64,000 bases of DNA from Ranitomeya imitator (taxonomy: Eukaryota): contig NC_091283.1 in NCBI RefSeq assembly GCF_032444005.1, positions 29,450,001-29,514,000 on the forward strand, read 5' to 3'. The position numbers were made by a program, and so were the translations under genes. Shown here piece by piece: positions 1-62,703 of this stretch. Numbering within the stretch: position 1 is the first letter of the stretch; each line of letters begins with the position of its first letter. Under the pieces are notes generated by a model. That model saw nothing but the letters and a program-made list of their open reading frames with translations, was not told the origin of the DNA and ran no database searches.

Positions 1-3000
1 CTTACACTCCTCACCTCTGTGAGCATGCTACTAATTTCCATCGTTCAGAGCATATACAACAAATATCACGAGGTGCGTATATGTGCGGGGACGGGGCACA
101 GATCACTGTATGTCATAGATAATAACCATTCCCTTATGGGTCTATAATCATTGCACCTAATACTATTGATTATATTTATTATGCTTAATTGTTTTTGGGT
201 AATTAGACAAACTGCAGATTTGGTGCGGATTTTCACTACAGATTTTATCCTTTGAAATTGGCATCAAAATCTGCATGTAACGTGGATTTCATTGCAGATT
301 TGCTATGAAATCCATAGCAGAAAAAGTCTACGGCCTTTACTTTTCATTAAACTTTTTAAATTTATTTTAGTTGCTCATTTTTACTGTTGTTACCATCTTT
401 AGACAATTGGGGTATGGTCACAGAGTGTTTTACATGAATTTTGAAGCAGATCCGCTTCCAAATCCAATTCAAAAAGTATTTCAAGAGTATATTAAGTGGA
501 TTTTAATGTGGATTTTTAAGTGGATCATTTTCAAAATCCATGTAAGAATAAACATCTGTGTGAGCATGCTCTTATTAGGTTTCGTGCACGTGGTCGTCTT
601 AGGGCTCCATATCATTCGGAGCTGGCATAAGGCTCCCATAAAGGTGCATAATCAGAGCAATAAAGACCTTAGGAACATGTAAAATACTCTGGATACATAA
701 AAATGGCAGCAGAGCCTTCCCACAATATATAGTAGATCTGAACTGTTTTGGACTAGATGACAGTATTTTGGAATATACTCTTTTGACCACAACCAACAAA
801 ACCACTGGTGTGAAAAAAGGATAAAAAAGGTTTATAGCGATCCCATGCATTACTTGACACCATTTCAATCATCTGAGCTACATGATGAAACTGTACAACA
901 CAGGCACTTCACAGGAAAAGAGACAAACTACTATCACAGTTACTGATGATGATTAGACGGCTCCTGTCATACAGTTATCATGTAGAAGAGGGAAACATGT
1001 TTTTACTTGAGTGTTTAAAGTATTCTTTGCACAAATATGTATTTTCTAATCTACAAAATGGACTGACTTATTTTTTTAATTTCTTCTCTCAGGATCTTGT
1101 GAAGAAGGTGCAGGATTCGATTGCCCGGTCAAGTGATCTCGCAAAAGAGATTATCGAGTCGGTTAAAACTGTGCAGAGTTTTGCTGCTGAACAAGAAGAA
1201 GTGAACAGATATGAAGAGTCCCTAAAAAAGACTCACAATCTGCAGATGTGGAGGGACATGACCACAGCTCTGTGTGACCTGTTAATAAGGGTGAATAAAC
1301 ACGTCGTATTCCTGGTGGTTACCGTACATTGTGTATGACGAGATGGCTGCCCATATTCACACTTGTCAGATAGGACATGTCTTCCGGCTTGGCTTCCGCT
1401 GTAGAATTTGCGTGAAATCCAACCACAGTCCACATCTGAGAAGTGCAAATCCACAGCAGAACAGGAGCAGAAATCCAGCCTGACCATCACATTTTTGCTA
1501 AAAATTTTTGCCTCTACATCCACAAGAACATTTGTGAGGTCAGACCCTGATAATGAGGAGATGCCGGGCTCACAATCTCTGTTCTTGGATGGGACTGAAG
1601 TCCGGGCTCTGTACGACCACTTATGTTCCCTCTCCTTGTCTGTATGGACCTTGTGCACTGGGCGCAGTCATGGGGAACAGAAAAGGGCGAACCCCAAACT
1701 GTTCCCACAAATCTGGGAGAATTAAGATTTCCTTTCACTGGAACTTAGAGACCAAGGACAATGCCTGATAACATCCCCATAGCATTGTCCTCCTCCACCA
1801 TCTGCACAATGCCGTTAAGGGGTAACGTTCTCATCTTCAAAGTTAGATGTGGTCTCAGCCACAGCGTGAAAAAACGACCTAAATGTGAGTGATATCTGTG
1901 CTGATGCTGGTGATTAGCTGTGTACCCTGACGATAAAGATGCTTTTCTTCCCTTCAGATTATCAATCGGGGGTCGCAGGTTTCCATATTATGCTATGGAC
2001 ATACATTAATCCTTGAGGGAGAGATGACCACCGGGGCGATGGTGTCCTTCATCATGTACCAGATGAAGTCTAGCAAGTGCATACAGGTACGAGACTAAAG
2101 AAATCACAATGGTGCATGTTTTCCAAAGTCAGTATGTTCACAGCTCTATACACCGCGTAGTGCCAGTTCTCTGGTACTTCAGCCCTGGTCCTATTGAAAT
2201 AAATGGGAGTTGAACATTAGTACACAAAACTGTTCACTACGCAGTGGGATCAGTGGGATACCCCCGGTATAGACACTGCCACGTGACATTGGTGTTGACC
2301 TTTTTTCCTCCATTGTTTTTAGAGCCTTATTCACATGCTCAGTGAGATAACCCATTCCGCAGGAGTCGCCTCCAAGATCTTTCAGTACCTGGATCGGGAG
2401 CCTAAGATCTCCACATCAGGATCACTTTGCCCAAAAGATTTACGTGGTGAATTTGAGTTCAGGAACGTCACATTTTATTATCCGTCCCGTCCAGACACCC
2501 CGGCCGTGCAGGTGAGTGTGCGGAACACCTTGTATTTTATACACCTTACATAATGACAGCTATCTCCTGGCCCCCCACACACGTAGTGGTTTGTGAGCCA
2601 AAAACTACGTGTCTTGTTACTGAGCTGAGCCCAATGATCCTACTCACCATAGAGAGCCGGCGTTCCCATCACATCCACCAGTTAATGTGGCGTACCAATA
2701 GAGCTCATACTGGAATGAAATAGTATTAGGCTGGGCCCCATAAAGAGCTATGTGTGAAGGGGGCTGGCTGACTGCTCATTTCAACAGCCTGGCCAGCCCC
2801 CCTTCTCTATGTGTTGGCTTTGTTAGAGAAGGGGGCTGGCTTAGCTTTCATGTGAGCAGTTTGCTTCTGCACAAATCTCTGCCCTGCTCTGAGATCCGGG
2901 ACCCTTTCCTATGTAAATTAGTAAGTTCCATCCCGAGTCTCATTGTGTGCGTCACTTTGACACCTCACATACTTTCCATACGTGTCCTGTTCTCTCATCT

Positions 3001-6000
3001 CCCCTATCATTTATTTTACGTCTGACAGGACTTATCCTTCAGTCTTCCCCCGGGAAGCGTCACCGCTCTTGTTGGACTCTCAGGAGGGGGGAAGACGACC
3101 TGTGTGTCCCTCCTGGAACGATTCTACGAGCCCCGGAATGGGGAGATCCTTCTCGATGGGAGACCGCTGGCTGAGTACGACCATCAGTATCTGCACAGTA
3201 AGGTAGGACTGGTATCAAAGCGCAGACATCCGGAGCATCGACCGCACACAAACCTCCAGCAGCTGACGGTCATTAATTTACATATTAATGTTTCCAGCTA
3301 TGTTCCTCACTATGTAACCCAGAATATTGTCCGCCCCCAGGATCACCTGCTTTATATCACATATTTCATGGAGCCTTCATATTTATACATGGATGATGTT
3401 ACTGATTGTATACGCTTCATTTATACGATCTGCTGGTTGTGTGCTTAGCGCTCCTTTAGTTCTGGGGCTCATTTATCGCCATTGTCCTTCTGGAAAAGCC
3501 TCGCTCCATTACCACCATTGTCACCAGTATCAGATCGGTGGTGGTGCTGGGTGTCGCCGCTTCGTAGGTCTCGTAGCCCCAGGATGTAGATTGTGTACAG
3601 AGCCGGAACAGCTGGGTACAATGTGTTATGGCCGTTCTCTGTACTGCAGCTCAGCTGCCAATAACGTGAATGTGATCTGAGCTGCACTTCCTGCGACCGG
3701 CCATAACACGGTGTAAGGAGCGGTGGCCTTCATGGCTCTATACACAGTGTACTTGACAAACAGCTTATCGGTGGCGTATCAGTCGGATATTGATGATCTA
3801 TCTCAAGGAAAACCCATCAATTTCATAATTCTGGACATCCCCTTTAATAATAATAAAGTAATCGTTGATCAATCTTTGTAAAGTTATGAATCTTTGTAAT
3901 ATATTCCATTAGTTTATGTTTCTTCCTTCTGTCTTGGTCACCACGCTGAAAGTGCTGGTTTGTCTGCCCAGTTCATGCAGTCTTGGTAGCTGTTATTACA
4001 GCAGAAAAAGGGGCAGCAGCGTTTACCTGCCCCGGTCTCATAGTTTAGTGTGAGGACCCTTGACACGGGGTGTGAGATTACATATCTTGTCAAAAATATT
4101 CACCAATCCCTCATATATTATGTGCTATATATTTTTTTTTGCAATTTCTTTTACAGGGTGCAGCCAGGCCCAACATTTTTTGGCCTTGTAAACGAGGGTG
4201 TCAGCACGGTGATAAAGAAAGAATGAATTAAAATAAGACAATGGAGCATATAACAACGATTCATAACGTTACAAAGACTGATCAATGATTAAACAAATAA
4301 TCATCATTTTATTTCTATAGCGCCAACATATTCCGCAGCACTGTACATTTAGAGGGGACTTGTACAGACAATAGACATTACAACATAACAATAAACACAT
4401 AAATCAACAGATACCAGGAGGAATGAGGGCCCTGCTGCTCGCAAACTTACAAAAAAAATAGTTTAGTTACTTTAATATTAAAGGGGATAGGTTGATATTT
4501 TAATATTTAAAGGGGATGGTTCTTCCTTGGGATAGGTAAAAAATATCCAATTGACGTCCCACACCGCCACCAATAAGCTGTTTGTCAAGATTCATCTATA
4601 TACATAATTGTCTAAGGGGTACTTCCGTCTGTCTGTCTGTCCTACTGTCACGGTTATTCGTTCGCTGATTGGTCTCGGCAGCTGCCTGTCATGGCTGCCG
4701 CGACCAATCAACGACGCGCACAGTCCGAAAGAAAATGGCCGCTCCTTACTCCCCGCACTCACTGCCCGACACCCGCATTCACCCTCCAGTCTGCCCTCAC
4801 ACAGGGTTAATAGCAGCGGTAACGGACCGCGTTATGCTGCGGTGTAATGCAGTCCGTTACCGCTGCTATTAACCCTGTGTGACCAAGTATTTTTACTATT
4901 GACGCAGCCTATGCAGCACCAATAGTAAAAACATTGCATGTTAAAAATAATTAAAAAAATTAAAAATGATGATATACTCACCTACACCGCCTTTCCCGCT
5001 CCTCGCTATGCAAACAGCACGTTCCGGTCGCATGGATGGTGTGGCAGAAGGACCTGCCATGACGTCACGGTCATGTGACCGCGACATCATGACAAGTCCT
5101 GTGCGCCTGCGCGAAAAGGACCTGCCGTAACGTCACGGTCATGTGACCGCTACACAGTCATGTGACCGCGACGTCACGGCAGGTCCTGCACTACAAGGAC
5201 CTTGCCGCTTGCAAGTGGCGGGAGAGTGGCGAGGAGCGGCAAAGGCGGCGGATGGTAAGTATAGCAGGACTTCCAACGGGCCTTCGGAAGGTGAGTATAG
5301 GATTATTTTTTTTTTCCGTCTCTATGCTACGTGGCTCTGTGCTGGGCAATATACTACGTGGCTGGATAATATACTCCGTAACTGGGCAATATACTACGTG
5401 GCTGGGCAATATACTCCGTAACTGAGCAATATACTATGTAACTGTACGTGGCTGGGCAATATACTATGTGACTGGGCAATATACTACGTGACTGGGCAAT
5501 ATACTACGTGACTGGGCAATATACTACGTCACTGGGCAATATACTACGTGGCTGGGCAATATACTACGTGGCTGGGCAATATACTACGTGACTGAGCAAT
5601 ATGCTACGTGGCTGGGCAATATACTACGTGACTGGGCAATATACTACGTGACTGGGCAATATACTACGTGTTTGGGCAATATACTACGTGACTGGGCACT
5701 ATACTACGTGACTGGGCACTATACTACGTGACTGGGCACTAAACTACGTGACTGGGCAATATACTACGTGACTGGGCAATATACTACGTGGCTGGGCAAT
5801 ATACTACGTGGCTGGGCAATATACTACGTGGCTGGGCAATATACTACGTGACTGGGCAATATACTACGTGGCTGGGCAATATACTACGTGACTGGGCAAT
5901 ATACTACGTGACTGGGCAATATACTACGTCACTGGGCAATATACTACGTGGCTGGGCAATATACTACGTGACTGGGCAATATACTACGTGACTGGGCAAT

Positions 6001-7879
6001 ATACTACGTGACTGGGCACTATACTACGTGACTGGGCACTATACTACGTGGCTGGGCAATATACTACGTGACTGGGCAATATACTACGTGACTGGGCAAT
6101 ATACGTGACTGGGCAATATACTACGTGACTGAGCAATATATTACGTGGCTGGGCAATATACTACGTGGCTCTGCTATATACTACGTGGCTGGGCAATATA
6201 CTACGTGGCTGGGCAATATACTACGTGACTGGCCAATATACTACGTGGCTGGGCAATATACTACGTGGACATGCATATTCTAGAATACCCGATGCGTTAG
6301 AATCGGGCCACCATCTAGTAACTTTATAAAGGCTGAGTAATAATGAAATAATAATAAAAAAAAGTTTAGTTACTCTTTAATAGAGATGTGCAACCTCGAA
6401 CTCAAAACAAAAACTCTGAGCACAGATTTCTCCCGGATGTCCATTGCAATGTTTGGCGTTTCGGGGGAAGTCCGGAAAGGGAGAAGAAGAGAGAGATAGA
6501 GGGAGAGAATTTTCTAGCTCAAAAGTTCAGGCCCCCATTGTTTTCATTGGTTCTGGTTCCATTTTGGATACAGTTCTGGTTCCAACCTTTGGAATAAAGT
6601 TCGGGTTGGATACCAGAACCCAAACTTCCACAGGTCCGCTCATCCCTATTCTTTAGGCATGTTAATGAGATATTTTTAATTCTAAGTACAGTAGCTGCAA
6701 ACAATATACTGATAATGTTCCTTCCAGGTGGCGCTGGTTGCCCAAGATCCGGTTTTATTTGCTGGAACAATAAAAGACAACATCACTTACGGACTCATCA
6801 GCAAAAGCAACGAGCAAGTGACAGAGGCAGCAAGGAACGCGAAGGCGGAGAACTTCATCAGCAACCTGGAGCAGGGCTACGACACAAGTAAGTGATACAA
6901 GCATTACATTCCACAGCCGAGATAAAAGATTTGTATTTATATTTTATATACACTATCATTACGGTGCGCAGTGCATTACGTATGAATGCCTTCCTGATGC
7001 AGGACTTAATAGCACTCGCTACGTTGGGTCTCCATGTCTGCAGCAGGCTCTGTAGCTGCGTCATACAGCCAGCATCTGCCACTAACAACAGCGACCAGCT
7101 ACCTCTGATCTCTGCGGTTTAATTATTTACATGCTGCTGTCAATCACTGGTGACATTGTTACTTTCATAAAAGTCTAATTTATCAAAATAAAAAACAAAT
7201 GAACCCACAAAGAGAAAAAATATCAAAATGCCAGATGTTGTTTTTCATCCGTTACTCCATACACAGCACTGGCCACAAATCTAGAGGTCGGAAGGTGTCT
7301 CCTATCAGGAGGCCTCATGTACATTAGGTTCTCCCACTTTCTGGCAAAAAATCATCAGGTTTTTACCGTAACGGTTCTGTCCCCTATCTACATTATTGTG
7401 CAGCATTTTCACGTCTGACTCTTGTTTTGACTTTTTAATCAGATTATTCTTAGATTCTTTGATTTCCTGTTTCCACAGATGTTGGAGATAGCGGGGCTCA
7501 GATGGGGGCCGGGCAGAAGCAGCGCATCGCCCTCGCTCGGGCGCTCGCCCGGAAACCTAAGTTACTTATTCTGGATGAAGCTTCCAGTTGTCTGGATGTA
7601 GAAACGGAGCACGAGGTGCGGTACGACGCTGGCCGGATCGGGGGGCTGCGGTCTGTTACTGTCCAACATTAATATATGTGTCCTCCACAGATCCAGCAGT
7701 CTGTGCAGAATATCCCCGGCCTCTCCGTCCTGATCATCGCTCATCGGCTGCGCACGGTGCGAGAAGCGGACCAGATTCTAGTTCTGGACAGAGGTCGGGT
7801 GGTCGAGCGCGGAAATCACACAGAGCTGGTGAAGAACGAGGAGGGAGCTTACTATAAACTCCTGAAGAACGGCGACTGA
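1..7879 (+). CDS. TAP2: Antigen peptide transporter 2, copy A (5'-partial: exons 4-11)
   Basis: Exons with GT-AG boundaries: <1-72, 1093-1290, 1958-2086, 2323-2511, 3029-3202, 6728-6887, 7479-7615, 7691-7879 (TGA). Sizes 198/129/189/174/160/137 fit the TAP exon pattern and the frame is open throughout. Walker [11 protein letters not shown]-loop AQDPVLF, degenerate signature MGAGQ, Walker B LLILDE and H-loop IAHRL form the TAP2-type combination. Confidence 0.93.
4300..4450 (-). mobile_element. LINE (L2/CR1-clade) 3'-end fragment
   Basis: 'atttctatagcgccaacatattccgcagcactgtaca' resembles the reverse complement of amphibian/fish L2-type 3' ends; a similar piece occurs at ~48885-48925. Confidence 0.4.
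4595..6318 (+). mobile_element. Non-autonomous Helitron carrying a 20-bp minisatellite
   Basis: A|TC 5' end at 4594/4595; subterminal hairpin cccgat-N8-atcggg (6288-6307); CTAG|T 3' end at 6318/6319; no TSD. The same family occurs at 44465-47976. Confidence 0.8.
5343..6267 (+). repeat. 20-bp minisatellite (ctgggcaatatactacgtg[g/a])n inside the Helitron
   Basis: Directly visible tandem array of roughly 45 units. Confidence 0.97.
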
Positions 7880-13459: not shown

Positions 13460-14328
13460 AGGGTATGTGCACACGATTCGGAAAACGCAGCAGTTTCCCA
13501 TTAGTTTGCATTGCAATGTAAACCTATGGGAAACAAAAAACGCTGTGCACATGCTGCAGAAAATAACGTGTGGAAACGCAGCGGTCTACATTCCGCAGCA
13601 TGTCACTTCTTTCTGCGGATTCCGCAGCGGTTTTACAGCTGCTCCTATAGAAAACCGCAGTTGTAAAGCCGCAGTGAAATCCGCTGTAAATCCACGATAA
13701 ATCTGCAGCAAAAACACAGCGTTTTTGCCCTGCAGATTTATCAGATCCGCTGCGGAAAAATCCACAGTGGACCATTATACATGTGCACATAGCCTTAGGA
13801 ATCCTTCGCTCATTCGCCTTTTTCATGTTAACAAATATAATAAATAATAATTGTGTTTTTTTATTCTGTAACATTATATAGAAGCATCTTCCCTGTTCTT
13901 TGTTAAATCCTCTAAAATAGCCAGTGAACATGTAAAAAAACCCAACATGTTAACAACAGGGTATGTGCACACGTTGCGGATTCTCTGCGGATCCGCAGCT
14001 TTTTTTGCGGTGCAGAAACGCTGCAGATCCACAATTGATTTACAGTACAATGTAAATCAATGAGAAAAAAAAATGCTGTGCACACTTTGCGGAAAATCCG
14101 CTGCAGAAACGCTGCAGTTTAAAAGAAGTAGCATGTCACTTCTTTTTTGTGAATCTGCAGCGTTTTTGTACCCATTCCATTATAGAAAACTGCAGCAAAA
14201 ACGCACAAAAAACGCTGCGGACCCACACAAAAAAAATGCAACAAATCCACAGGTGCGTTTTCTGCCAGGAGAGGTAGAATCCGCACCAGAAATTCCTAAG
14301 CCTAATCCGCAACGTGTGCACATAGCCT
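13460..14328. mobile_element. Two PIF/Harbinger-type MITEs in tandem (~13460-13795 and ~13960-14326)
   Basis: TIRs GGGTATGTGCACAC / GTGTGCACATAGCC with TWA flanks. The second element shares its TTA flank with the next MITE at 14330. Confidence 0.7.
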
Positions 14329-14329
14329 T

Positions 14330-15896
14330 AGGGTACCGTCACACTATACCATTTAGATCGCTACGACGGTACGATTCGTGACGTTCCAGCGATATCGTTA
14401 CGATATCGCTGTGTCTGACACGCAGCAGCGATCAGGGATCCTGCTGAGAATCGTACGTCGTAGCAGATCGTATGGAACTTTCTTTCATCGCTGGATCTCC
14501 CGCTGTTATCGCTAGATCGGTGTGTGTGACACCGATCTAGCGATGCGATCCAGCGATGCGTTTGCTTGTAACCAGGGTAAACATCGGGTAACTAAGCGCA
14601 GGGCCGCGCTTAGTTACCCGATGTTTACCCTGGTTACAAGCGTAAAACTAAAAAACAAACAAACAGCACATACTTACATTCTGGTGTCCGTCAGGTCCCT
14701 TGCAGTCTGCTTCCCGCACTGTGACTGCCGGCCATAAAGTGAAAGCAGAGCACAGCGGTGACGTGCTTTCACTTTCACTTTACGGCCGGCAGTCACAGTG
14801 CGGGAAGCAGACTGCAAGGGACCTGACGGACACCAGATGTAAGTATGTGCTGTTTGTTTTTTTTTAGTTTTACGCTTGTAACCAGGGTAAACATCGGGTA
14901 ACTAATCGCGGCCCTGCGCTTAGTTACCCGATGTTTACCCTGGTTACCCAGGGACCTCGGCATCGTTGGTCGCTGGAGAGCTGTCTGTGTGACAGCTCCC
15001 CAGCGACCACACTACGATTTACCTACGATCACGGCCAGGTCATATCGCTGGTCGTGATCGTAGGTAAATCGTATAGTGTGACGGTACCATTGGAGTCCTT
15101 GGTCATGAAAGGGTAACGGAGCTAAGGATACCGTCACACTATACGATTTACCTACGATCACGACCAGCGATATGACCTGGCCGTGATCGTAGGTAAATCG
15201 TAGTGTGGTCGCTGGGGAGCTGTCACACAGACAGCTCTCCAGCGACCAACGATGCCGAGGTCCCTGGGTAACCAGGGTAAACATCGGGTAACTAAGCGCA
15301 GGACCGCGCTTAGTTACCCGATGTTTACCCTGGTTACAAGCGTTAAACTAAAAAAAAACAAACAGCACATACTTACATTCTGGTGTCCGTCAGGTCCCTT
15401 GCAGTCTCTGCTTCCCGCACTGTGACTGCCGGCCGTAAAGTGAAAGTGAAAGCACAGCCGCTGTGCTCTGCTTTCACTTTACGGCCGGCAGTCACAGTGC
15501 GGGAAGCAGAGACTGCAAGGGACCTGACGGACACCAGAATGTAAGTATGGGCTGTTTGTTTTTTTTTAGTTTAACGCTTGTAACCAGGGTAAACATCGGG
15601 TAACTAAGCGCGGTCCTGCGCTTAGTTACCCGATGTTTACCCTGGTTACAAGCGAACGCATCGCTGGATCGCATCGCTAGATCGCTAGATCGGTGTCACA
15701 CACACCGATCTAGCGATGACAGCGGGAGATCCAGCGATGAAAGAAAGTTCTAAACGATCTGCTACAACGTACGATTCTCAGCAGGATCCCTGATCGCTGC
15801 TGCGTGTCAGACACAGCGATATCGTAACGATATCGCTGGAACGTCACGAATCGTACCGTCGTAGCGATCGAAATGGTATAGTGTGACGGTACCCTA
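14330..15896. mobile_element. Inverted dimer of a ~765-bp Harbinger-type MITE (14330-15088 and 15126-15896)
   Basis: TIR GGGTACCGTCACACTATA. Copy 2 is the near-exact reverse complement of copy 1; copy 2 has a TAA...TAA TSD and copy 1 has TTA...TTG; ~37-nt spacer. Confidence 0.85.
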
Positions 15897-16278
15897 AGTA
15901 AATTACTGCGAACCATGAAGTAAACCTAGTTATGAAAAGGCCTTTGAGCTGAGTCAAATCCTTCTCATCCAGCCAACCAGCACCCTCCTCTACTGACAAG
16001 ATGGGTCTCTGGCTTAGCTACAGACAGGTTCCTGGCTTAGATACAAATGGGTTTGTGGTTTAGCTACAAATCCGTTTCTTGTTTGGCCAATATCCTTAGT
16101 CATGTTGCAAGGCTCGTTAAAGGGTCAGATGACTTGTAGAATAGCAATCTCCAATAGTTAATACAAGAGTGTGAGAGAAAAAAAGCTATGGAGAACTCTT
16201 GCACTTTGCCTTTACAGTAGTTTTGGTAACTTTTGATTGTGACTGCCCTTCACAATTAAGGTAAAAAATAATACAAAA

Positions 16279-16927: not shown

Positions 16928-17889
16928 CAAGGACTGAATATTGGCCCAGGTGGCTCATGTACTCTAGACCGTAGGTTCTCAACCCTTCAGGTAGATGACA
17001 TGTCTCTAAGTGGAATCTATGCTGCCCAGTGTCAGATCATAACTTCAGAGGTATGTAATTTGTTTCAGTAGGAACATTGAGAAACACAAATCCAGATTAC
17101 GTGGGCCTCACGATTTATACTACTCAGCCTGCAGCATTTCTCCATCATCTGGAGGAAGGGTGGATGGCGTGAAACTAGAGACATGGCACGGGTCCACCAC
17201 ATTGGCCTTCAAGTTTCAGCATGGAGTGATTGTGGCGGTGGATTCCCGTGCGTCGGCAGGACAGTATATTGGTGAGTGGTTGCTAAATACCTTTTACATT
17301 AGAACTTAATTTCCAAGTGATTTAGTACTAGCCATGGGTGACCGATTACTTCCATAAAATGATTCCCATGCATCATTTTCCCCACAGCTACACTGAAGGT
17401 TAACAAAGTGATTGAGATAAACCCGTATCTGCTGGGCACCATGTCCAGGAGTGTGGCAGACTGTCAGTACTGGGAACGGCTTCTCGCCAAGGAGTGCAGG
17501 TGTGTTATATAATACCGATAACTGCATATTAGTGAGTATGATTATGGAACGATCGTTTGCTCAATGACACTGTCCAATAAATCAAAAACCTTTATTTCCA
17601 TTTCCTTACTCATATTTGTAAGAGCTTCTTTCCTAAGAAAGATTTTAGGAAGTTTGGGCCTAACAGTGCAGATTCCCTTCTCAAAGCGGCACTGAGAACG
17701 ACACAACACTGTCTCTGGACCAGTGACAAACTTTACTCATTCTCGAGGACCAATCACTGGAATAAAGCCTTAACATCTCAGCCTCTGGTTACATGTGCAG
17801 AAGCCACACTCTGTTCTTCACCCTCAGGTCCACACCTAGACGGTCTTGCACAATGTCCGGTCTCAACACGCATCAGTCACATTTCACTT

Positions 17890-18704: not shown

Positions 18705-20449
18705 TTACACCTCAGGCCTTTGTCTCCTGCAGTGACACATTATTCACTCACAGTACAAGCGCTCTCGGATCTTGACTCCGCACCCCTGGCCAGCTTTTCA
18801 GATGATAGTCACTTGCCTCGCTCTTGGTGTCAACACCTCTCAGGTGTCTTGTCAACCTTGCTGGAACACCACAATATGCTTAGACTTTCTCCGGCTTTCA
18901 CTCACTATGGTTGGGCAACACTCTTTACTTTTTTGTTACCGCTTACAGATTCATCTGCCAGGGGCATTCACAGAGGTAACTTAGCCATGGGCAGCACACT
19001 GTATCTGATTAATCTACCTGTCCCTAACAGCTTGCCTTTTTTGCCTCATCACATTCAGCCATTATTGTTACTTTGAGAAATAATTTGAGAATTTTGTTCA
19101 CTTCATTTCGGAATGTGTTTAAAAATTAATTTGCAATTTACTGATCATTGTATGGTTACCAAATTTTTAGCTTATTCCCACCTTCATCTTTCATGGTGGA
19201 AATAACTCCATCCAGGCTTTAACCACAGGTGGTGGGGCTACAGAAGTGGCTACCCTGTGGTCATAGGTCCCATTCATTTCTATAGCCGATCTCAGCTGTT
19301 TTTGGAAATCCATCTCCAGTGGTCGATGCCTGGATGGAGTTATTGCAGCCATAAATGGTTGAGGTGGGAATAAACCATTCATTTTTTATTGTGTTTATTT
19401 TACACATTTTGTGTCCTAATTTTATTATTCAGCATTTTTTTAACACTTCATTAGGACGTTGTAATATATTGAAATGAGTCTAGCTATGTTCGTATCTGCA
19501 CCGGAGACTTGCAGATTCCAGATTTGATAGGAGATACAGAACTGTCAAAATTACTGACCCAATGTTGGGGCAAAAGAGATCCCACTATAAGTCAATGGGG
19601 TCCTTTGTGTGCTGGAGGTTTCCTTTGACTGTTTTGGCTTTCATTATAGACAGAAGCCGCAACGCACATGTGAATAGAGGATATGTACATTTTACCTAAT
19701 ATCCACACATTCCTCTTTATATCAGGTTATACCAGCTGCGGAATAATTCCCGGATCACGGTGTCGGCAGCTTCCAAACTCCTATGTAACATGATGCTTGA
19801 GTACAGAGGTACAGGACTGAGCGTGGGCAGCATGATCTGTGGCTGGGATGAGAAGGTAATAGGCTTGGAACGATGATTAGGCTGCAGAATTGCTTCATTA
19901 CCAGTTGGCAAATGAACCAGAATTTGCAGGAGACAGAATTTAACATTACACGTCTTTCTCATGTCCCTAAATGTCCAACCGTGGTGCTCAAAAACCTCAT
20001 AGAGTGCTGTGTTCAGACTATCGGTATTTCTCTGAAGCGATTGGTATTAAATTATGGTTAAAATATACTAGACACAGCAATTTTCTTTCATGATTTCCTG
20101 AATATTCAAGAAAGCAACAGTGCGGTTCTGCCTTTCTTAGGATATCTGTGGGTGCAGAATTGTTCTGCATCTAAATGAAAAATGATAATTTTCCATCTCG
20201 ATTTTTTATTTTCGTTTATTACTGTGAGAGTAATAACCAAACAGCTCAAAATGTGCAAAGTACAATTATGACATTTCTATTAAAACCTCAGTCACCAATA
20301 TAGTAATATGGCCGTCCTTCTTCTCAATAACAATCAATAGCTCCATCCATGGAGTCTGTGGACGATCAACTTTTTGGGTAGAACCAACCACAGCCCCATA
20401 CACTTATCAGGGAGGTAACTGTTCTGCTTCACTGTTACAACACCTCCCA

Positions 20450-23400
20450 TAATACTGACGATGAGGAGCGATGGTGTGTTCCATACATAATACTGACGAT
20501 GAGGAGTGACGGTGTGTTCTACACATAATACTGACGATGAGGAGCGATGGTGTGTTCTACACATAATACTGATGATGAGGAGCGATGGTGTGTTCTGTAC
20601 ATATTACTGACGATGAGGAGCGATGGTGTGTTCTATACATAATACTGACGATGAGGAGCGATGGTGTGTTCTACGCATAATACTGACAATGAGGAGCGAT
20701 GGTGTGTTCTACACATAATACTGACAATGAGGAGTGATGGTGTGTTCTATACATAATACTGACGATGAGGAGCGATGGTGTGTTCTATACATAATACTGA
20801 CGATGAGGAGCGATGGTGTGTTCTATACATAATACTGACGAGGAGTGACGGTGTGTTCTACACATAATACTGACAATGAGGAGCGATGGTGTGTTCTATA
20901 CATAATACTGATGATGAGGAGCGATGGTGTGTTCTATATATAATACTGACAATGAGGAGCGATGGTGTGTTCTATACATAATACTGACAATGAGGAGCGA
21001 TGGTGTGTTCTACACATAATACTGACGATGAGGAGTGATGGTGTGTTCTATACATAATACTGACGATGAGGAGCGATGGTGTGTTCTGCACATAATACTG
21101 ACAATGAGGAGTGATGGTGTGTTCTATACATAATACTGACGATGAGGAGCGATGGTGTGTTCTGCACATAATACTGACGATGAGGAGTGATGGTGTGTTC
21201 TGCCCATAATACTAACAATGAGGAGTGATGGTGTGTTCTACACATAATACTGATGATGAGGAGCGATGGTGTGTTCTATATATAATACTGACGATGAGGA
21301 GCAATGGTGTGTTCTGTACATAATACTGACAATGAGGAGCGATGGTGTGTTCTGTACATAATACTGACAATGAGGAGCGATGGTGTGTTCTATATATAAT
21401 ACTGACGATGAGGAGTGTCAGTATTAGACGTGGTATATCTCGATTTTTCCAAAGCGTTTGATACCGTGCCGCACAAGAGGTTGGTACACAAAATGAGAAT
21501 GCTTGGTCTGGGGGAAAATGTGTGTAAATGGGTTAGTAACTGGCTTAGTGATAGAAAGCAGAGGGTGGTTATAAATGGTATAGTCTCTAACTGGGTCGCT
21601 GTGACCAGTGGGGTACCGCAGGGGTCAGTATTGGGACCTGTTCTCTTCAACATATTCATTAATGATCTGGTAGAAGGTTTACACAGTAAAATATCGATAT
21701 TTGCAGATGATACAAAACTATGTAAAGCAGTTAATACAAGAGAAGATAGTATTCTGCTACAGATGGATCTGGATAAGTTGGAAACTTGGGCTGAAAGGTG
21801 GCAGATGAGGTTTAACAATGATAAATGTAAGGTTATACACATGGGAAGAGGGAATCAATATCACCATTACACACTGAACGGGAAACCACTGGGTAAATCT
21901 GACAGGGAGAAGGACTTGGGGATCCTAGTTAATGATAAACTTACCTGGAGCAGCCAGTGCCAGGCAGCAGCTGCCAAGGCAAACAGGATCATGGGGTGCA
22001 TTAAAAGAGGTCTGGATACACATGATGAGAGCATTATACTGCCTCTGTACAAATCCCTAGTTAGACCGCACATGGAGTACTGTGTCCAGTTTTGGGCACC
22101 GGTGCTCAGGAAGGATATAATGGAACTAGAGAGAGTACAAAGGAGGGCAACAAAATTAATAAAGGGGATGGGAGAACTACAATACCCAGATAGATTAGCG
22201 AAATTAGGATTATTTAGTCTAGAAAAAAGACGACTGAGGGGCGATCTAATAACCATGTATAAGTATATAAGGGGACAATACAAATATCTCGCTGAGGATC
22301 TGTTTATACCAAGGAAGGTGACGGGCACAAGGGGGCATTCTTTGCGTCTGGAGGAGAGAAGGTTTTTCCACCAACATAGAAGAGGATTCTTTACTGTTAG
22401 GGCAGTGAGAATCTGGAATTGCTTGCCTGAGGAGGTGGTGATGGCGAACTCAGTCGAGGGGTTCAAGAGAGGCCTGGATGTCTTCCTGGAGCAGAACAAT
22501 ATTGTATCATACAATTATTAGGTTCTGTAGAAGGACGTAGATCTGGGTATTTATTATGATGGAATATAGGCTGAACTGGATGGACAAATGTCTTTTTTCG
22601 GCCTTACTAACTATGTTACTATGTTACTATGAGTGATGGTGTGTTCTGTACATAATACTGACGATGAGGAGCGATGGTGTGTTCTATATATAATACTGAC
22701 GATGAGGAGTGATGGTGTGTTCTGTACATAATACTGACAATGAGGAGCGATGGTGTGTTCTATATATAATACTGACGATGAGGAGCAATGGTGTGTTCTG
22801 TACATAATACTGACAATGAGGAGCGATGGTGTGTTCTATATATAATACTGACGATGAGGAGTGATGGTGTGTTCTGTACATAATACTGACGATGAGGAGC
22901 GATGGTGTGTTCTATACATAATACTGACGATGAGGAGTGATGGTGTGTTCTACACATAATACTGACAATGAGGAGTGATGGTGTGTTCTGCACATAATAC
23001 TGACAATGAGGAGCGATGGTGTGTTCTATACATAATACTGACGATGAGGAGTGATGGTGTGTTCTATACATAATGCTGACAATGAGGAGCGATGGTGTGT
23101 TCTGTACATAATACTGACGATGAGGAGCGATGGTGTGTTCTATACATAATACTGATGATGAGGAGCGATGGTGTGTTCTACACATAATACTGACGATGAG
23201 GAGTGACGGTGTGTTCTATACATAATACTGATGATGAGGAGTGACGGTGTGTTCTATACATAATACTGACAATGAGGAGCGATGGTGTGTTCTGTACATA
23301 ATACTGACGATGAGGAGTGATGGTGTGTTCTACACATAATACTGACGATGAGGAGCGATGGTGTGTTCTGCAGATAATACTGACGATGAGGAGCGATGGT

Positions 23401-24050
23401 GTGTTCTGTACATAATACTGACGATGAGGAGCGATGGTGTGTTCTACACATAATACTGACAATGAGGAGTGATGGTGTGTTCTGCACATAATACTGACAA
23501 TGAGGAGCGATGGTGTGTTCTACACATAATACTGACAATGAGGAGCAATAGTGTGTTCTATACATATTACTGACGATGAGGAGCGATGGTGTGTTCTATA
23601 CATAATGCTGACGATGTGGAGCGATGGTGTGTTCTGCAGATAATACTGACGATGAGGAGCGATGGTGTGTTCTACACATAATACTGACGATGAGGAGTGA
23701 CCGTGTGTTCTGCACATAATACTGACAATGAGGAGCAATAGTGTGTTCTATACATAATACTGACGATGAGGAGCGATGGTGTGTTCTATACATAATGCTG
23801 ACAATGTGGAGCGATGATGTGTTCTACACATAATACTGACGATGAGGAGTGACGGTGTGTTCTGCACATAATACTGACGATGAGGAGTGACGGTGTGTTC
23901 TATACATAATACTGATGATGAGGAGTGACGGTGTGTTCTACACATAATACTGACAATAAGGAGCGACGGCGTGTTCTATACATAATACTGACAATGATGA
24001 GCAGCGGTGTGTTCTGTACATAATAATGACGATGAGGAGCGGCGCTGTGT
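20450..24050. repeat. 38-bp minisatellite (cataatactgacgatgaggagcgatggtgtgttctata)n in PSMB8 intron 4, split by a CR1
   Basis: Direct tandem array on both sides of 21418-22630. Confidence 0.97.
21418..22630 (+). mobile_element. 5'-truncated CR1 LINE (RT C-terminus, uninterrupted ORF 21415-22521)
   Basis: YLDFSKAFDTVPH, GVPQGSVLGP and FADDTKL RT motifs; (ATGTTACT)n 8-bp 3' tail; GAGTG target duplication (21413-21417 / 22631-22635). Confidence 0.95.
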
Positions 24051-24554
24051 TTTGTGCATAATACCAAACATTAGAACCATTTACATTCTGTTTAACCTAC
24101 AGGGCCCTGGTTTATATTACGTGGATGAAAATGGGACAAGACTCTCCAATGACATGTTCTCCACCGGATCAGGAAGTTCCTTTGCTTATGGAGTTATGGA
24201 TAGTGGATACCGCAAAGATCTGACCCCTGAAGAGGCGTATGACCTGGGCCGCAGAGCTATCAGTTATGCCGCACACCGTGACAATTATTCCGGAGGGGTG
24301 GTGAATAGTAAGTACCTCTGCTACTGTCTGCAGATATAAAACCATAGCTCATATATAATAGGCATGTTTACTGAATATATATTTTTTCCACATTATATTT
24401 CTTCTCTTTACAAATATTTTTAGCTCCGCCAGGGTAACAGGAACTCAAGACCGCTTTTTTTGTGATTGTGGAAGAACATCATCTCCACATTTCTTGACTT
24501 TGTTGTTGACCTATTGGCCAATTAGCCATTTACATTCAGTTAGAAGGTGCAGAG

Positions 24555-26950
24555 GCGGTAAAGAGAAAGATCTGCCTACTAGATGGTGCAGCGGCGGTAA
24601 AGAGAAAGCTCTGCCTACTAGATGGTGCAGCGGCGGTGTTGCAAAAGCTCTGCCCACTAGACGGGGCAGCAGCGGTGTTGAGAAAGCTCTGCCCACTAGA
24701 CGGGGCAGCAGCAGTGTTGAGAAAGCTCTGCCCACAAGACGATGCAGAGAAAGCTCTGCCATCTAGAGGGCGCAGCAGTGGTGCGGAGGAAGCTCTTCCC
24801 ACTAGGCGATGGTGCGAAGGAAGCTCTGTCCATTAATCGGGCAGCAGAGGTGCGGATGAAGCTCTGCCCATTAGTCGGGCAGCAGAGGTGCGGATGAAGC
24901 TTTGCCCATTAGTCGGGCAGCAGAGGTGCAGGTGAAGCTCTGCCCATTAGTCAGGGCAGCAGAGGAGTGGATGAAGCTGTGCCCATTAGTCGGGCAGCAG
25001 AGGTGCGGATGAAGCTCTGCCCATTAGTCGGGCAGCAGAGGTGCGGATGAAGCTGTGCCCATTAGTCGGGCAGCAGAGGTGCGGATGAAGCTCTGCCCAT
25101 TAGGCGGGACTGCAGAGGTGCGGATGAAGCTCTGCCCATTAGTCGGGACTGCAGAGGTGCGGATGAAGCTCTGCCCATTAGGCGGGACTGCAGAGGTGCG
25201 GATGAAGCTCTGCCCATTAGTCGGGCAGCAGAGGTGCGGATGAAGCTCTGCCCATTAGTCGGGCAGCAGAGGTGCGGATGAAGCTCTGCCCATTAGTCGG
25301 GCAGCAGAGGTGCGGATGAAGCTCTGCCCATTAGTCGGGGCAGCAGAGGAGTGGATGAAGCTGTGCCCATTAGTCGGGCAACAGAGGTGCGGATGAAGCT
25401 CTGCCCATTAGTTGGGGCAGCAGAGGTGCGGATGAAGCTCTGCCCATTAGTCGGGCAGCAGAGGTGCGGATGAAGCTCTGCCCATTAGTCGGGCAGCAGA
25501 GGTGCGGATGAAGCTCTGCCCATTAGTCGGGGCAGCAGAGGAGTGGATGAAGCTGTGCCCATTAGTCGGGCAACAGAGGTGCGGATGAAGCTCTGCCCAT
25601 TAGTTGGGGCAGCAGAGGTGCGGATGAAGCTCTGCCCATTAGGCGGGACTGCAGAGGTGCGGATGAAGCTCTGCCCATTAGTGGGGCAGCAGAGGTACGG
25701 ATGAAGCTCTGCCCATTAGTCGGGGCAGCAGAGGTACGGATGAAGCTCTGCCCATTAGTCGGGGCAGCAGAGGTGCGGATGAAGCTCTGCCCATTAGGCG
25801 GGACTGCAGAGGTGCGGATGAAGCTCTGCCCATTAGTCGGGGCAGCAGAGGTGCGGATGAAGCTCTGCCCATTACTTGGGGCAGCAGAGGTTAGGATGAA
25901 GCTCTGCCCATTAGTCGGGGCAGCAGAGGTACGGATGAAGCTCTGCCCATTAGTCGAGCAGCAGAGGTGCGGATGAAGCTCTGCCCATTAGTCGGGGCAG
26001 CAGAGGTGCGGATGAAGCTCTGCCCATTAGGCGGGACTGCAGAGGTGCGGATGAAGCTGTGCCCATTATTCGGGGCAGCAGAGGTGCGGATGAAGCTCTG
26101 CCCATTAGGCGGGACTGCAGAGGTGAGGATGAAGCTCTGCCCATTAGTCGGGCAGCAGAGGTGCAGATGAAGCTCTGCCCATTAGTCGGGCAGCAGAGGT
26201 TAGGATGAAGCTCTGCCCATTAGTCGGGGCAGCAGAGGTGAGGATGAAGCTCTGCCCATTAGTCGGGCAGCAGAGATGCGGATGAAGCTCTGCCCATTAG
26301 TCGGGGCAGCAGAGGTGAGGATGAAGCTCTGCCCATTAGTCGGGGCAGCAGAGGTGCGGATGAAGCTCTGCCCAAAAGTCGGGCAGCAGAGATGCGGATG
26401 AAGCTCTGCCCATTAGTCGGGGCAGCAGAGGTGAGGATGAAGCTCTGCCCATTAGTTGGGAAGCAGAGGTGCGGATGAAGCTCTGCCCATTAGTCGGGGC
26501 AGCAGAGGTGAGGATGAAGCTCTGCCCATTAGGCGGGACTGCAGAGGTGCGGATGAAACTCTGCCCATTAGTCGGGGCAGCAGAGGTTAGGATGAAGCTC
26601 TGCCCATTAGTTGGGGGAGCAGAGGTGCGGATGAAGCTCTGCCCATTAGTCGGGCAGCAGAGGTGCGGATGAAGCTCTGCCCATTAGTTGGGGCAGCAGA
26701 GATGCGGATGAAGCTCTGCCCATTAGGCGGGACTGCAGAGGTGCGGATGAAGCTCTGCCCATTAGTCGGGCAGCAGAGATGCGGATGAAGCTCTGCCCAT
26801 TAGGCGGGACTGCAGAGGTGCGGATGAAGCTCTGCCCATTAGTCGGGGCAGCAGAGGTTAGGATGAAGCTCTGCCCATTAGTTGGGGGAGCAGAGGTGCG
26901 GATGAAGCTCTGCCCATTAGTCGGGGCAGCAGAGGTGCGGATGAATCTCT
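24555..26950. repeat. 38/39-bp minisatellite (gatgaagctctgcccattagtcgg[g]gcagcagaggtgcg)n in PSMB8 intron 5
   Basis: Direct tandem array; each unit contains the inverted pair ctgccc...gggcag; units are more degenerate at the 5' edge. Confidence 0.97.
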
Positions 26951-27794
26951 GCACATTAGGCGGGCAATGGCTGCACGATTTTGAAACAAAATTGTGTAGC
27001 AAAAGGCCATCACAGTGGAAGGTGTTTCTGTTGATTCTACGCTTAAAGGGACTTTCTTCTCTTCATTTACAGTTAAAATAGTTGTGCTAAGTATGAAGTT
27101 ATCCACTATACAAGGAACTTCCTGGTTGTTGGGGGTCCAGATACTGGGACCCCCATTGATTCTGAGAATGCTGTGCTTGGATATTTCCGTCAGTCTCATA
27201 GTGAAAGAATGGAGCAGGGGTGCGCACACTCAACCTCCGCTACATTTACACCTAATTCTTAAGAGCCACAGTCATGGGATCGATGGGGGTCATACTTACC
27301 AGAGTAATGCACCCCCTCGCTCCAGAGCTGCCGCTGTGACGGTCTACCACTCGCGCCCACCACTGACCTTCCCGCGGAGGCCACTGATTGGCTGCAGGGT
27401 AAGGTAACTGGTGTCTGAGATGTCACTATTTCCTGTCTGTCCGGCGGAGACCATCAGAGTGCCAGCGTCGGAGCAGACCGGTAAGTACGGCTTCTTTATC
27501 TCTTTTACAAGCATGGCTTCCCTCTGTTAACTTTATAAAGAGAGCAAACCCCTTTTATTAATTTCATGACATCGATTAAACGTTTGCCTGGTCTGTGTCT
27601 CCTCAGTGTACCACATGAAGGAGGACGGATGGGTGAAAGTCGGGCAGTACGATGTCAGCGACCTGCTGTACGAGTACAAGGAGGAGAAGAAGTGACGGCA
27701 GAGACTGAGCCCAGCGACGAAGACTCCATTATCGTCTCCAACATTTCTCCATTTTTCGTTATCACAACAAACCTGCGAATGTCAATCCCCCAAA

Positions 27795-28477: not shown

Positions 28478-31400
28478 TCATTCCTTGGTGTCTCCGTTCT
28501 CCCGGTGGAAAGTGCTGTGCTGCTTCTTCCAGAGTCTCCAGTAGACGCCCTCCTGGGCCAGTAAATGTTCATGTCTGCCGGACTCTCTGATCTGACCTCC
28601 TTCCAGAACCAGAATGTGGTCGGCTTTCTCCACGACGTTCAGGCGGTGGGATATCAGCAGTACCGTACGTTTGTTTGGGTTGTCATAAATGGTTCTTTGT
28701 ATCTGGACAGAAAAGTCACAGCACAGAATTACATAAGGACAGTCCGCGCCTCCTCACAGGGGAACACATGAGTGAAAATCTGCTGTACAAAAGCATAGAT
28801 GGAGAATCGAGCAGCACCAGAGGGGACCAGGATGGGTGCGATTCCCACACCAGTCTATTATGTATGTGTGAGTAACAATGAGATAATCGCTGATCGTCGC
28901 GCCTTCCAGCTATTTGGTGCGGCTACTAGTTACAGTCTCCTCGTGGCCAGCATGGCTACTCAGCGTCAGGTCACACGCTCCCTCCATCAAAGCTGAGTGG
29001 GTGTTACGGCAGTGAGGAGACCCTGTCTAGTCCCCACTGCAGCATCGTCACAGAGATAACTACAAGGAGCGGCGCACAGCAATCTGTAAGTCACTTTTCT
29101 CATTCATACATTCATTCATATTTTCATGGAAAACCAGTAATGTATGGAACATGTCGTATGGCGCAATGCTCAGCGGCACAACTGGGGAAACGCTGTGAAC
29201 ATTGCAGCATTATCCTATCGGTTTACTCACCTTGAGTTCACTTTCAGAGTCCAGGGAGCTGCTGACATCATCCAGTATAAGGACCTTGGGATCCCTCACC
29301 AGGGCCCGCGCTAACGCCACTCTTTGTTTCTGACCCCCAGACAAAAGGGCGCCTTTTTGTCCAGCACCTAAAATACAGCACATGACTATTATCTCCACAC
29401 ACGAGTCATTCATTTATTGCTGCGAGAATACAAGACCGTCCTTCAGAGTGTGCAAAGCGCGCAGCCGCACAGAGAACATCAGCCACACAGAGAACATCAG
29501 CCACACAGAGAACATCAGCCACACAGAGAACATCAGCCGTACAGAGAACATCAGCCGCACAGAGAACATCAGCCGTACAGAGCACATCAGCCACAGAGAG
29601 AACATCAGCCACGCAGAGCACATCAGCCACACAGAGCACATCAGCCACACAGAGCACATCAGCCGTACAGGGAACATCAGCCGTACAGAGAACATCAGCC
29701 ATACAGAGAACATCAGCCAAATAAGACACATCAGCCACACAGAGAACATCAGCCACACAGAGAACATCAGCCACAGAGAGAACATCAGCCACACAGAGAA
29801 CATCAGCCGTACAGAGAACATCAGCCAAATAAGACACATCAGCCACACAGAGAACATCAGCCACACAGAGAACATCAGCCACACAGAGCACATCAGCCGT
29901 ACAGAGAACATCAGCCGTACAGAGAACATCAGCCGCACAGAGAACATCAGCCACAGAGAGAACATCAGCCACACAGAGCACATCAGCCACACAGAGCACA
30001 TCAGCCGTACAGAGCACATCAGCCGCACAGAGAACATCAGCCATACAGAGAACATCAGCCAAATAAGACACATCAGCCACACAGAGAACATCAGCCACGC
30101 AGAGCACATCAGCCGCACAGAGCACATCAGCCGAGCAGAGCACATCAGCCGCACAGAGAATATCAGCCACGCTGAGCACATCAGCCACGCAGAGAACATC
30201 AGCCGCACAGAGAACATCAGCCACGCAGAGCACATCAGCCACGCAGAGCACATCAACCGCACAGAGAACATCAGCCGCACAGAGCACATCAGCCACGCAG
30301 AGTACATCAGCCGCACAGAGAACATCAGCCACGCTGAGCACATCAGCCACGCAGAGAACATCAGCCACACAGAGAACATCAGCCACGCAGAGAACATCAG
30401 CCGCACAGAGAACATCAGTCACGCAGAGCACATCAACCGCACAGAGAACATAGGCCGCAGAGAGAACATCAACCACACAGAGAACATCAGCCGCACAGAG
30501 AACATCAGCCGCACAGAGCACATCAGCCACGCAGAGCACATCAACCGCACAGAGAACATCAGCCACACAGAGAACATCAGCCACACAGAGAACACCAGCA
30601 GTACAGAGCACATCAGCCAAGTAAGACACATCAGCCACACAGAGAACATCAGCCAAATAATACACATCAGCCGCACAGAGAACATCAGGAGCACAGAGAA
30701 CATCAGCCATACAAAGAAATCAGCCGCACAGAACACATCAGTCGTTCCTATGTGACCCCTATATGACCACCATGCATTGTAATGCAGACTGTATAGCGGT
30801 ATTATTCACATACCGTATAGAACTATTATTATATGGAGCAGTTTCGGTCACTGCAGGTATCTGAGCACTGTATGGGGGAATAGACACTGTATATCTCCTG
30901 TGCTGTACAATATATTATTCCTGCAATGTATGGTGGTGGCGGCACTATAGAGTTTATATATAGTTGAGGCATTTTCCTCACATTGTTATTATGCTCATGT
31001 ATGGCACTAGTATGTAGGCACTAAACATTACACCAAATAGGGTAATAACAGAAACTACAACCCAGGGCAGAATGTAATAACCCTTGTGTGACCAGACGCT
31101 TCCATCACGCCTCGTATATCATCTGTCCTACACCCACCTGTCTTGTACCCGTCCACCATGGTGGAAATAAAATCATGTGCGTTTGCTGCGGCTGCCGCGT
31201 TCTCCACGGACGACTGAGAAACGTGTCCCAAACCGTAAGAGATATTGTCATCTAATGGCCGGGCAGTGAGGACGGGCTCCTGACTCACCACGGACACCTG
31301 CAATGAAGGAAGCGAGGTAGGACAGAGGACAGTGACCACGTGAGACGCCACCAGCGGCACATGATGATGATGATGGAGTCCGCTTCCAGTCTCACTGCTC

Positions 31401-32146: not shown

Positions 32147-32186
<40 letters not shown>

Positions 32187-37363: not shown

Positions 37364-37420
<57 letters not shown>

Positions 37421-61365: not shown

Positions 61366-61402
<37 letters not shown>

Positions 61403-62481: not shown

Positions 62482-62703
62482 GTAGGACTGGTATCAAAGC
62501 GCAGACATCTGGAGCATCAACCGCACAGAAGCCTCCAGCAGCTGACGGTCATTAATTTATATATTAATGTTTCCAGCTATGTTCCTCACTATGTAATCCA
62601 GAATATTGTCCGCCCCAGGATCACCTGCTTTATATCCCATATTTCATGGAGCCTTCATATTTATACATGGATGATGTTACTGATGTATACACTTCATTTA
62701 TAC
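59245..62703 (+). repeat. Paralogous copy of window positions 1-3426 (segmental duplication)
   Basis: Exons and introns align continuously, with substitutions and small indels, until the CR1 insertion at 62704. Confidence 0.95.

Follow-up and report, generated by a model that had tools for sequence, protein, structure and literature searches.

A 64,000-nt stretch of the Ranitomeya imitator genome (NC_091283.1, positions 29,450,001–29,514,000 of the forward strand; below called the window, in whose numbering all coordinates are given) contained two copies of the peptide transporter gene TAP2, designated A and B, which stood in tandem, both on the plus strand, at a distance of 59.2 kb. Their comparison pointed, with a probability of roughly one half, to an asymmetric divergence of an expressed tandem duplicate, in which the uneven load of differences among the exons would have three separate causes. 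Copy B would have kept the ancestral sequence, while the majority of the membrane-exon replacements would have arisen on copy A, with several radical ones among them at positions conserved in vertebrate TAP2; exon 7 would be part of a near-identical tract of approximately 270 nt, produced by a recent short gene conversion between A and B; and exon 8 would be held by purifying selection, with a synonymous divergence of about the intron rate. The window covered copy A from the end of exon 4 to exon 11 and copy B from exon 1 to exon 8, and no N runs or gaps were found in it.

The two copies were compared by global alignment (positions 1–3426 against 59245–62703, 90.3% identity including gaps, the homology stopping at 62703 at the start of a repeat) with counts per segment, the whole basis being 27 exon differences with 16 replacements. 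The last 72 nt of exon 4 in copy A (1–72; the window begins inside the gene, with an open frame and a donor GT at 73) differed at 2 positions, both leading to a replacement (S6F and L10P, from A to B). Exon 5 (1093–1290 in A, 60355–60552 in B) had 10 differences in 198 nt and 4 replacements, exon 6 (1958–2086 and 61192–61320) 10 in 129 nt and 7, exon 7 (2323–2511 and 61559–61747) a single one in 189 nt, which was a replacement (K18R), and exon 8 (3029–3202 and 62308–62481) 4 in 174 nt and 2. The limits of these exons in copy B followed from the alignment with copy A, for exons 5 and 6 also from Pfam and from RNA-like contigs. All nucleotide and amino acid counts given per exon in an earlier note on this DNA were reproduced exactly; the same was true for the length of exon 8, but not for its start at 3028, where the acceptor AG ends. 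Neither stops nor frameshifts were present in the compared exons (part of exon 4 to exon 8) of either copy. The difference between exons 5–6 (20/327) and exons 7–8 (5/363) was significant (Fisher p=0.0009) and stayed beyond chance when the four adjacent changes at 1274–1277 were taken as one event (17/327 vs 5/363). In exon 5, seven of the 10 differences fell inside an 18-nt patch (1264–1281), the other 180 nt carrying three.

The earlier note had seen in this skew a concentration of divergence in the transmembrane (TM) exons, as opposed to those on the side of the nucleotide-binding domain (NBD). The contrast with exons 7–8 was indeed real, but measured against the introns (144/2594 or 5.55%, plus 21 indel events, over four and a half introns) the picture was different: exons 5–6 were not enriched (6.1%, p=0.70), and it was exons 7–8 that were depleted (1.4%, p=0.00017). 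Pairwise Nei-Gojobori estimates from the two sequences gave a synonymous divergence (dS) of 0.126, a non-synonymous divergence (dN) of 0.048 and a dN/dS ratio of 0.38 for exons 5–6, and values of 0.023, 0.011 and 0.48, respectively, for exons 7–8. Taken exon by exon, the ratio was 0.25 in exon 5, 0.60 in exon 6 and 0.33 in exon 8, the latter having a synonymous divergence of 4.7%, i.e., near the intron rate. A dN/dS of 1 or more, as would be expected under positive selection, was found in no segment. Since synonymous and non-synonymous sites dropped together, the skew was not specific to amino acid changes, and because synonymous sites and introns were equally patchy, the skew alone is no evidence of the diversifying selection that had been proposed from it: both ratios were below 1 and similar, and dS was skewed to an equal degree. 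From these comparisons, adaptive or diversifying selection on copy A is not demonstrated.

The intron differences were overdispersed (variance/mean of 2.2 with either 50- or 100-nt bins, permutation p<0.001), and the divergence in 150-nt windows ranged from 0 to 13%. Exon 6 was situated inside a patch of high divergence, with intron flanks at 9–10%, while the candidate conversion tract at 2290–2558 (plus strand), which includes exon 7 and reaches 33 nt into intron 6 and 47 nt into intron 7, had only 1 difference in 269 nt. No differences were present in its 80 intronic nt, in comparison with ~4.4 expected. Its longest runs of identity were 183 nt (2376–2558), a length expected ~0.014 times under a uniform rate, and 85 nt (2290–2374), and beyond ~60–90 nt the flanks of exon 7 were back to ~5% divergence. 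The tract suggests a recent short gene conversion between the copies. Intron 7, between exons 7 and 8, was 7.2% diverged, so that no single tract homogenises the 3' half. Of the alternative raised earlier, a conversion acting on only the 3' exons, the part concerning exon 7 fits the data, whereas exon 8 needs nothing but purifying selection and its conservation is best accounted for by ordinary selection of this kind on the exon encoding Walker A. Exon and intron divergence went in parallel, as anticipated for a pure conversion mosaic, only in part: the flanks of exon 6 were high and the exon 7 tract entered both introns, while the overall correlation between exon and flank divergence was weak (r~0.7, n=5, not significant).

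A hypervariable patch with 9 differences in 42 nt (1264–1305, plus strand) crossed the boundary of exon 5 and intron 5 and was bounded by identical stretches of 39 nt (1225–1263) and 92 nt (1306–1397). At the positions equivalent to human TAP2 373–378 it encoded T-A-L-C-D-L in copy A and R-A-L-Y-L-L, the same as in human, in copy B. In another frog's genomic contig with exon 5 (L001), the six codons of the patch were AGA GCT TTG TAT CTT CTC, i.e., RALYLL, which resolves the four adjacent differences into Y to C and a two-base change of L to D on copy A and a synonymous TAT to TAC on copy B. When a donor for the patch or for the end of exon 6 was looked for in the window, including the TAP1-like gene described below, only chance matches of ≤13 nt were found. 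DNA contigs with a second species label (X6) were ~5–6% from copy A and had the copy B letter at 14 of 15 listed positions of intron 4, and they read T-A-L-Y-L-L in the patch, half A-like and half B-like. With such a mixed patch they were dropped as a clean outgroup, and the use of the comparison, made on 40 of 230 variants, was restricted to the six codons of the patch. In a contig of the DNA run X1 (record 2), which was A-like at 1129, 1221 and 1224 and again from 1478, the segment 1265–1398 was B-like, representing either an A allele with a B patch obtained by exchange or a de Bruijn chimera. Both the X6 and the X1 contigs hint that the segment with the patch is exchanged or hypervariable, albeit the contigs are possibly chimeric. 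Run X1 was dropped as a source for copy number and phase because of its short A-like/B-like mosaics and a depth available only per contig. Close to the end of exon 6 (2066–2079), an A>G variant at 2075, where A and B do not differ, occurred in X1, X5 (an RNA-like run, see below) and X6 alongside the B-like G at 2066, pointing to a third haplotype or paralogue where this exon encodes TM6.

In terms of human TAP2, exon 5 corresponded to residues 316–381 (cytosolic extension of TM4, coupling loop and start of TM5), exon 6 to 382–424 (TM5, luminal loop and first half of TM6) and exon 7 to 425–487 (cytosolic end of TM6, linker and first NBD strand). The description of exons 7–8 as lying on the NBD side is therefore correct for exon 8 and only partly so for exon 7. 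The peptide-binding setting ascribed to exons 5–6 stands, their 316–424 equivalents being inside or beside the regions of TAP2 cross-linked to substrate, 301–389 and 414–433 (PMC5199193). Of the 11 replacements in exons 5–6, 9 lay within these regions, but as 78% of both exons taken together belongs to them, this was no enrichment. In peptide-bound structures of human TAP, R373 and L377 of TAP2 contact the peptide N-terminus and R373 forms the N-pocket entrance together with TAP1 E301, while the R373A mutation left MHC-I surface expression unaffected (MHC, major histocompatibility complex; PMC11161800). No residue of exon 6 (382–424) is named as a peptide contact in that paper (PMC11161800). 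The equivalents of both named N-terminal contacts were altered in copy A, within one mutational cluster. They would thus be changed at the rim of the pocket for the peptide N-terminus, with a possible effect on the N-terminal preference for peptides, and the peptide cavity of copy A, including this rim, would have come under relaxed or altered selection after the duplication, the changes being either adaptive or merely tolerated.

The polarity of the replacements was deduced from separate alignments of each exon with 13–67 TAP2-like outgroup proteins. The states derived on copy A were S6 and L10 in exon 4, T58, C61 and D62 in exon 5, and R4, I10 (weak), K37 and C41 in exon 6; those derived on copy B were, in the membrane exons, limited to T13 in exon 5 and V18 (weak) in exon 6, with a resulting tally of ~9 vs 2 (sign test ~0.07, two-sided). 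Residue 10 of exon 4 was a proline in 12 of the 13 outgroups. In the exon 5 patch the R/Y/L residues were kept (Y in 49/67 at residue 61 and L in 42/67 at residue 62), and D or E was present at the L377-equivalent position in none of the 67. At residue 4 of exon 6, L was found in 15 of 19 outgroups and R or K in none. Along the membrane domain copy A had changed from P to L and from F to S in TM4, from Y to C and from L to D at the start of TM5, from L to R inside TM5, and from E/D to K and from Y to C in TM6. In exons 7–8 copy B was the odd one at residue 18 of exon 7 (K18R) and residue 47 of exon 8, and not a single replacement was clearly A-derived (D1N of exon 8 being assignable to neither branch), against ~7–8 expected on copy A from half of 5.55% over 275 non-synonymous sites. 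Such a deficit indicates that copy A is still constrained, or was homogenised, in this part.

Expression was judged from Logan contigs, where depth is given per contig and is weak evidence and paralogue chimeras are possible, using the RNA-like runs X3 and X5, which belong to two studies and carry one species label. Both runs contained the spliced joint of exons 4 and 5 (70 to 1091, with GT..AG ends) and joints of exons 7 and 8 (records 15 and 21), in each case identical to copy A with 0 other letters; record 15 of X3 ran on into exon 9, its loose end at 3204 being the first bases of that exon. In X3, an A-type exon 6 contig (depth 17.9) was present beside a B-type spliced exon 5–6 contig (record 13, depth 10.8). 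Transcription and splicing of both A and B thus occur in at least two samples. Lack of transcription of copy A, named in the earlier note as a possible objection, did not apply in view of the spliced A-type contigs in two runs, and the note's rejection of a uniform pseudogene decay was confirmed by the open exons 4–11 of copy A and its spliced transcripts: stops, frameshifts or lost splice sites, the signs of a pseudogene, were absent from exons 4–11 of A and exons 1–8 of B, the exon 5 donor of A (see below) being the one irregularity.

The behaviour of intron 5 (1291–1957 in copy A) was peculiar. Its donor in copy A is GTGAAT, with A at +5, versus GTGAGT in copy B, and it was the only intron with exact copy A contigs in X3 and X5 (records 11, 12, 17 and 19, none of them with other letters). 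In these runs, depth was absent over introns 4 and 6, except for a trace in X5 over a repeat at 921–1035, and intron 7 had depth only at a high-copy repeat (2646–2875). Read-through into intron 5 of copy A would meet a stop after 18 codons. There may be a partial retention of intron 5 specific to copy A.

Several points weigh against an asymmetric divergence with three separate causes. The data are few, with 27 differences in exons and 16 replacements, the 9-vs-2 asymmetry reached only p~0.07, two of the polarity assignments depend on weak outgroup majorities, and that of T58 is uncertain, since the X6 contig also has T. The basis for a conversion at exon 7 is 80 nt of intron (where the lack of any difference has P~0.01), the exonic part of the 2290–2558 tract being explicable by purifying selection alone. 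Given the result with R373A, one or more of the contact changes may have no functional consequence. A possible retention of intron 5 behind its weaker donor could mean that copy A is heading for a loss of function. Finally, the Logan contigs may be paralogue chimeras and offer no reliable depth, and exons 1–4 of copy A (apart from the last 72 nt) and exons 9–11 of copy B are outside the window.

Among the alternatives, the least improbable, although still doubtful, is a pure mosaic without a functional shift, made up of conversion tracts and local variation in mutation rate on top of domain constraint. It would agree with the overdispersed intron divergence of 0–13%, with the high values of both exon 6 and its flanks and the near-zero values of exon 7 and its immediate flanks, and with a fivefold skew common to synonymous and non-synonymous sites. 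It is further favored by an 18-nt cluster with 7 differences in intron 7 (at ~2868–2891), which is as dense as the exon 5 patch, and by the X1 contig with its B-like segment inside A-like flanks, as an exchange between A and B would leave it. A mosaic, however, leaves unexplained why most replacements fell on copy A and hit conserved positions; moreover, divergence was at the normal ~5% in the flanking sequence up to 100 nt from exons 7 and 8, the exon–flank correlation was weak, and the X1 mosaic is maybe a de Bruijn artefact. An adaptive diversification, in which the cavity of copy A was reshaped by positive selection to give a second TAP that prefers other peptides and co-evolves with a class I gene linked to it, is unlikely. 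The A-lineage replacements are radical, occur at conserved sites and include both reported contacts of the peptide N-terminus, while the NBD exons of copy A are conserved and the copy is expressed; if ~9–10 of the 14 non-synonymous changes in the membrane exons belong to A, its branch would be ~3% long, compared to 2.8% for half of the intron divergence, with a dN/dS (omega) near 1 or more. Besides, rat and chicken are known to have TAP2 specificity variants, and such variants are suspected for Xenopus and salamanders (PMC5824609, PMC7883663). But a single branch under relaxed constraint would show just such an omega close to 1, the pairwise dN/dS was below 1 in both exons 5 and 6 and the synonymous changes clustered in the same patch. 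The lack of enrichment in the cross-linked regions (9/11 vs 78%) and the neutrality of R373A in human TAP do not favor adaptation either, and the classical specificity residues of the C-pocket (human 210–273) are outside the comparison.

An early stage of decay of copy A into a pseudogene, with function being lost while transcription goes on and with 3' exons kept alike by conversion from copy B, is very improbable. Such a decay might be read from a charged residue entering TM5 twice (L to D and L to R), the loss of a conserved proline in TM4, two changes from Y to C, and the exon 5 donor without G at +5, with exact A contigs only over intron 5 and the stop after 18 codons. It is opposed by the absence of stops and frameshifts in exons 4–11, by spliced A-type contigs in two independent runs at a depth not below that of the B-type, and by exon 8, which has no clearly A-derived replacement (D1N aside) although intron 7 next to it is 7% diverged. 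It is hardly credible that A and B are divergent haplotypes of a single TAP2 locus which the assembler misplaced in tandem: ancient allelic lineages of TAP2 and PSMB8 do exist in the class I regions of frogs, and a divergence of 5% is within the range where assemblers split haplotypes, but the uninterrupted sequence had unique PSMB8 and TAP1-like genes between the copies, and both types were present in RNA-like runs from two studies and samples. Also, the X6 contigs appeared, at the listed positions, closer to B than A is, suggesting that the duplication is older than the species split.

The gene map was made by tblastn with vertebrate outgroup TAP2 proteins, and PDB and Pfam were searched exon by exon. 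The architecture was that of a type IV ABC exporter, in which an ABC ATPase domain comes after the membrane domain: the Pfam profile ABC_membrane matched exons 4–6 in one or both copies (profile positions 112–268; in copy A, 169–227 in exon 5 and 234–268 in exon 6), and ABC_tran matched exon 8 (positions 3–57 in copy A). The best PDB match of exon 5 was TAP2 residues 317–378 (E=1.7e-8), followed by ABCB9 (1.5e-4) and TAP1 (2e-3). Exon 7 matched TAP2 residues 426–486 at 8e-12 and TAP1 at 2e-9, with the bile salt export pump slightly above TAP2, and the best match of exon 6 was ABCB9 (4e-4), TAP2 having just 0.31. The top full-length matches in a representative protein library resembled vertebrate TAP2. 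The assignment of both genes to TAP2 in the earlier note was supported, exons 5 and 7 being nearer to human TAP2 than to TAP1 in the PDB comparison and the Pfam domains in agreement.

Downstream of exon 8, which carries Walker A, copy A continued with exon 9 (6728–6887, Q-loop region), an open reading frame without stop and with 56–63% identity to outgroup TAP2 in tblastn, exon 10 (7479–7615), recognized by its reading frame and outgroup comparison and containing the signature GAGQKQR and Walker B, and exon 11 (7691–7879) with the H-loop IIAHRL and the stop codon, where the gene ends at 7879. Thus, Walker A, Q-loop, signature, Walker B and H-loop were all readable in exons 8–11. Exons 1–4 of copy B were located by tblastn at ~54213–54662, 55082–55207, 56576–56720 and 59111–59316 (plus strand), with residues 14–327 covered continuously and no stop inside the exons; the open first exon aligned with the N-terminal 160 residues of one outgroup TAP2 at 27% identity.

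The space between the TAP2 copies was occupied by PSMB8, with an exon at 17160–17309 (~17.2 kb), and by a TAP1-like ABCB gene on the minus strand (28523–41619), both non-duplicated in the window, i.e., TAP2 had here the linkage to PSMB8 and TAP1 typical of the MHC class I region. The TAP1-like gene had the TAP1-type Walker B LILDD, and its last exon matched TAP1 in PDB, with 0 TAP2 chains among the 60 best matches. It also possessed an unusual Walker A (GACDAGKST), an H-loop reading LISHRL and introns with long tandem arrays. Human TAP1 has Q in the place of the H of this LISHRL.

Apart from the TAP2 pair, no long duplication with the 59.2-kb offset was found, the remaining self-matches in the window being satellites and transposons or their copies. 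A 20-nt satellite (unit ACTGGGCAATATACTACGTG and variants) was present at 5323–6268 in intron 8 of copy A and at 45124–47926 upstream of copy B, in both places within copies of a single repeat element. The window also had long tandem arrays (periods including ~38 and ~18 nt), located at 20448–24064, 24540–26966, 29462–30745 and 41602–42128, the first two within the strongest positive GC skew of the window (up to 0.34 at 20–28 kb). Two near-perfect palindromes (14327–15898 and 35462–37379), ~95% identical to their own reverse complement over 1.6–1.9 kb, are probably inverted-repeat transposons.

For TAP2, duplicates and variants in specificity have been described before, from other amphibians, fish, rat and chicken (PMC10210626, PMC7883663, PMC5824609). 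The frog pair shares with the rat cim-a/cim-u and the chicken TAP2 haplotypes a variation of the membrane domain in or beside the cavity, a conserved NBD and the MHC linkage with PSMB8 and TAP1. However, the rat and chicken forms are alleles of one locus with measured differences in transport, concerning mainly the C-pocket (rat residue 218, PMC11161800), in contrast to two tandem loci in the frog that differ in contacts on the N-terminal side (373/377 equivalents). Closer in structure are the likewise lineage-specific tandem TAP2 duplications within the core class I region of Leptobrachium and Pleurodeles, the duplicates of salamander antigen-processing genes (APG) and the TAP2 paralogues of teleosts (PMC10210626, PMC7883663, PMC5824609). 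Asymmetric cavity changes and evidence of splicing were not described for amphibian or fish TAP2 duplicates in the literature found. On dendrobatid TAP2 this literature consisted only of the amphibian MHC architecture paper, and in PMC10210626 a TAP2 duplication is not listed for the one dendrobatid, Oophaga pumilio, whose assembly is fragmented. In a predicted protein of 1221 residues (P0001; presumably from a fish, judging by its sequence), one TAP2 unit followed another, probably because gene prediction had fused neighbouring TAP2 genes, which would be a further sign that tandem duplication of TAP2 recurs. The ancient TAP2 lineages of Xenopus are similarly two divergent frog forms linked to PSMB8 and class I. 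The Xenopus forms are, however, alleles and far more divergent than the ~5% pair on one haplotype described here. Interlocus gene conversion in the MHC likewise leaves short near-identical tracts across exon–intron borders and patchy divergence; compared to such cases, the frog pair has a single candidate tract of ~270 nt, backed by 80 nt of intron.

In non-mammals, TAP and class I genes are considered to form linked, polymorphic sets that co-evolve, with functional evidence coming nearly all from rat and chicken alleles. An expressed pair of TAP2 genes that differ at contact positions would represent a natural experiment, in which the same TAP1 is combined with either TAP2. A far-reaching and rather improbable version is that copy A is a working second TAP2 with a rebuilt rim of the N-pocket, where an acidic residue stands in place of the leucine packed against the peptide N-terminus and the gate arginine is lost, and that TAP2A and TAP2B therefore differ in the first residues of the peptides they accept. 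If true, a working copy A would provide a paralogue-based, not allele-based, widening or partition of the peptide supply to frog class I molecules, and it might be matched to a duplicated class I/PSMB8 cassette nearby. If copy A merely drifts, the locus would show the pace at which the peptide cavity decays in a redundant transporter whose ATPase side is kept by constraint or conversion.

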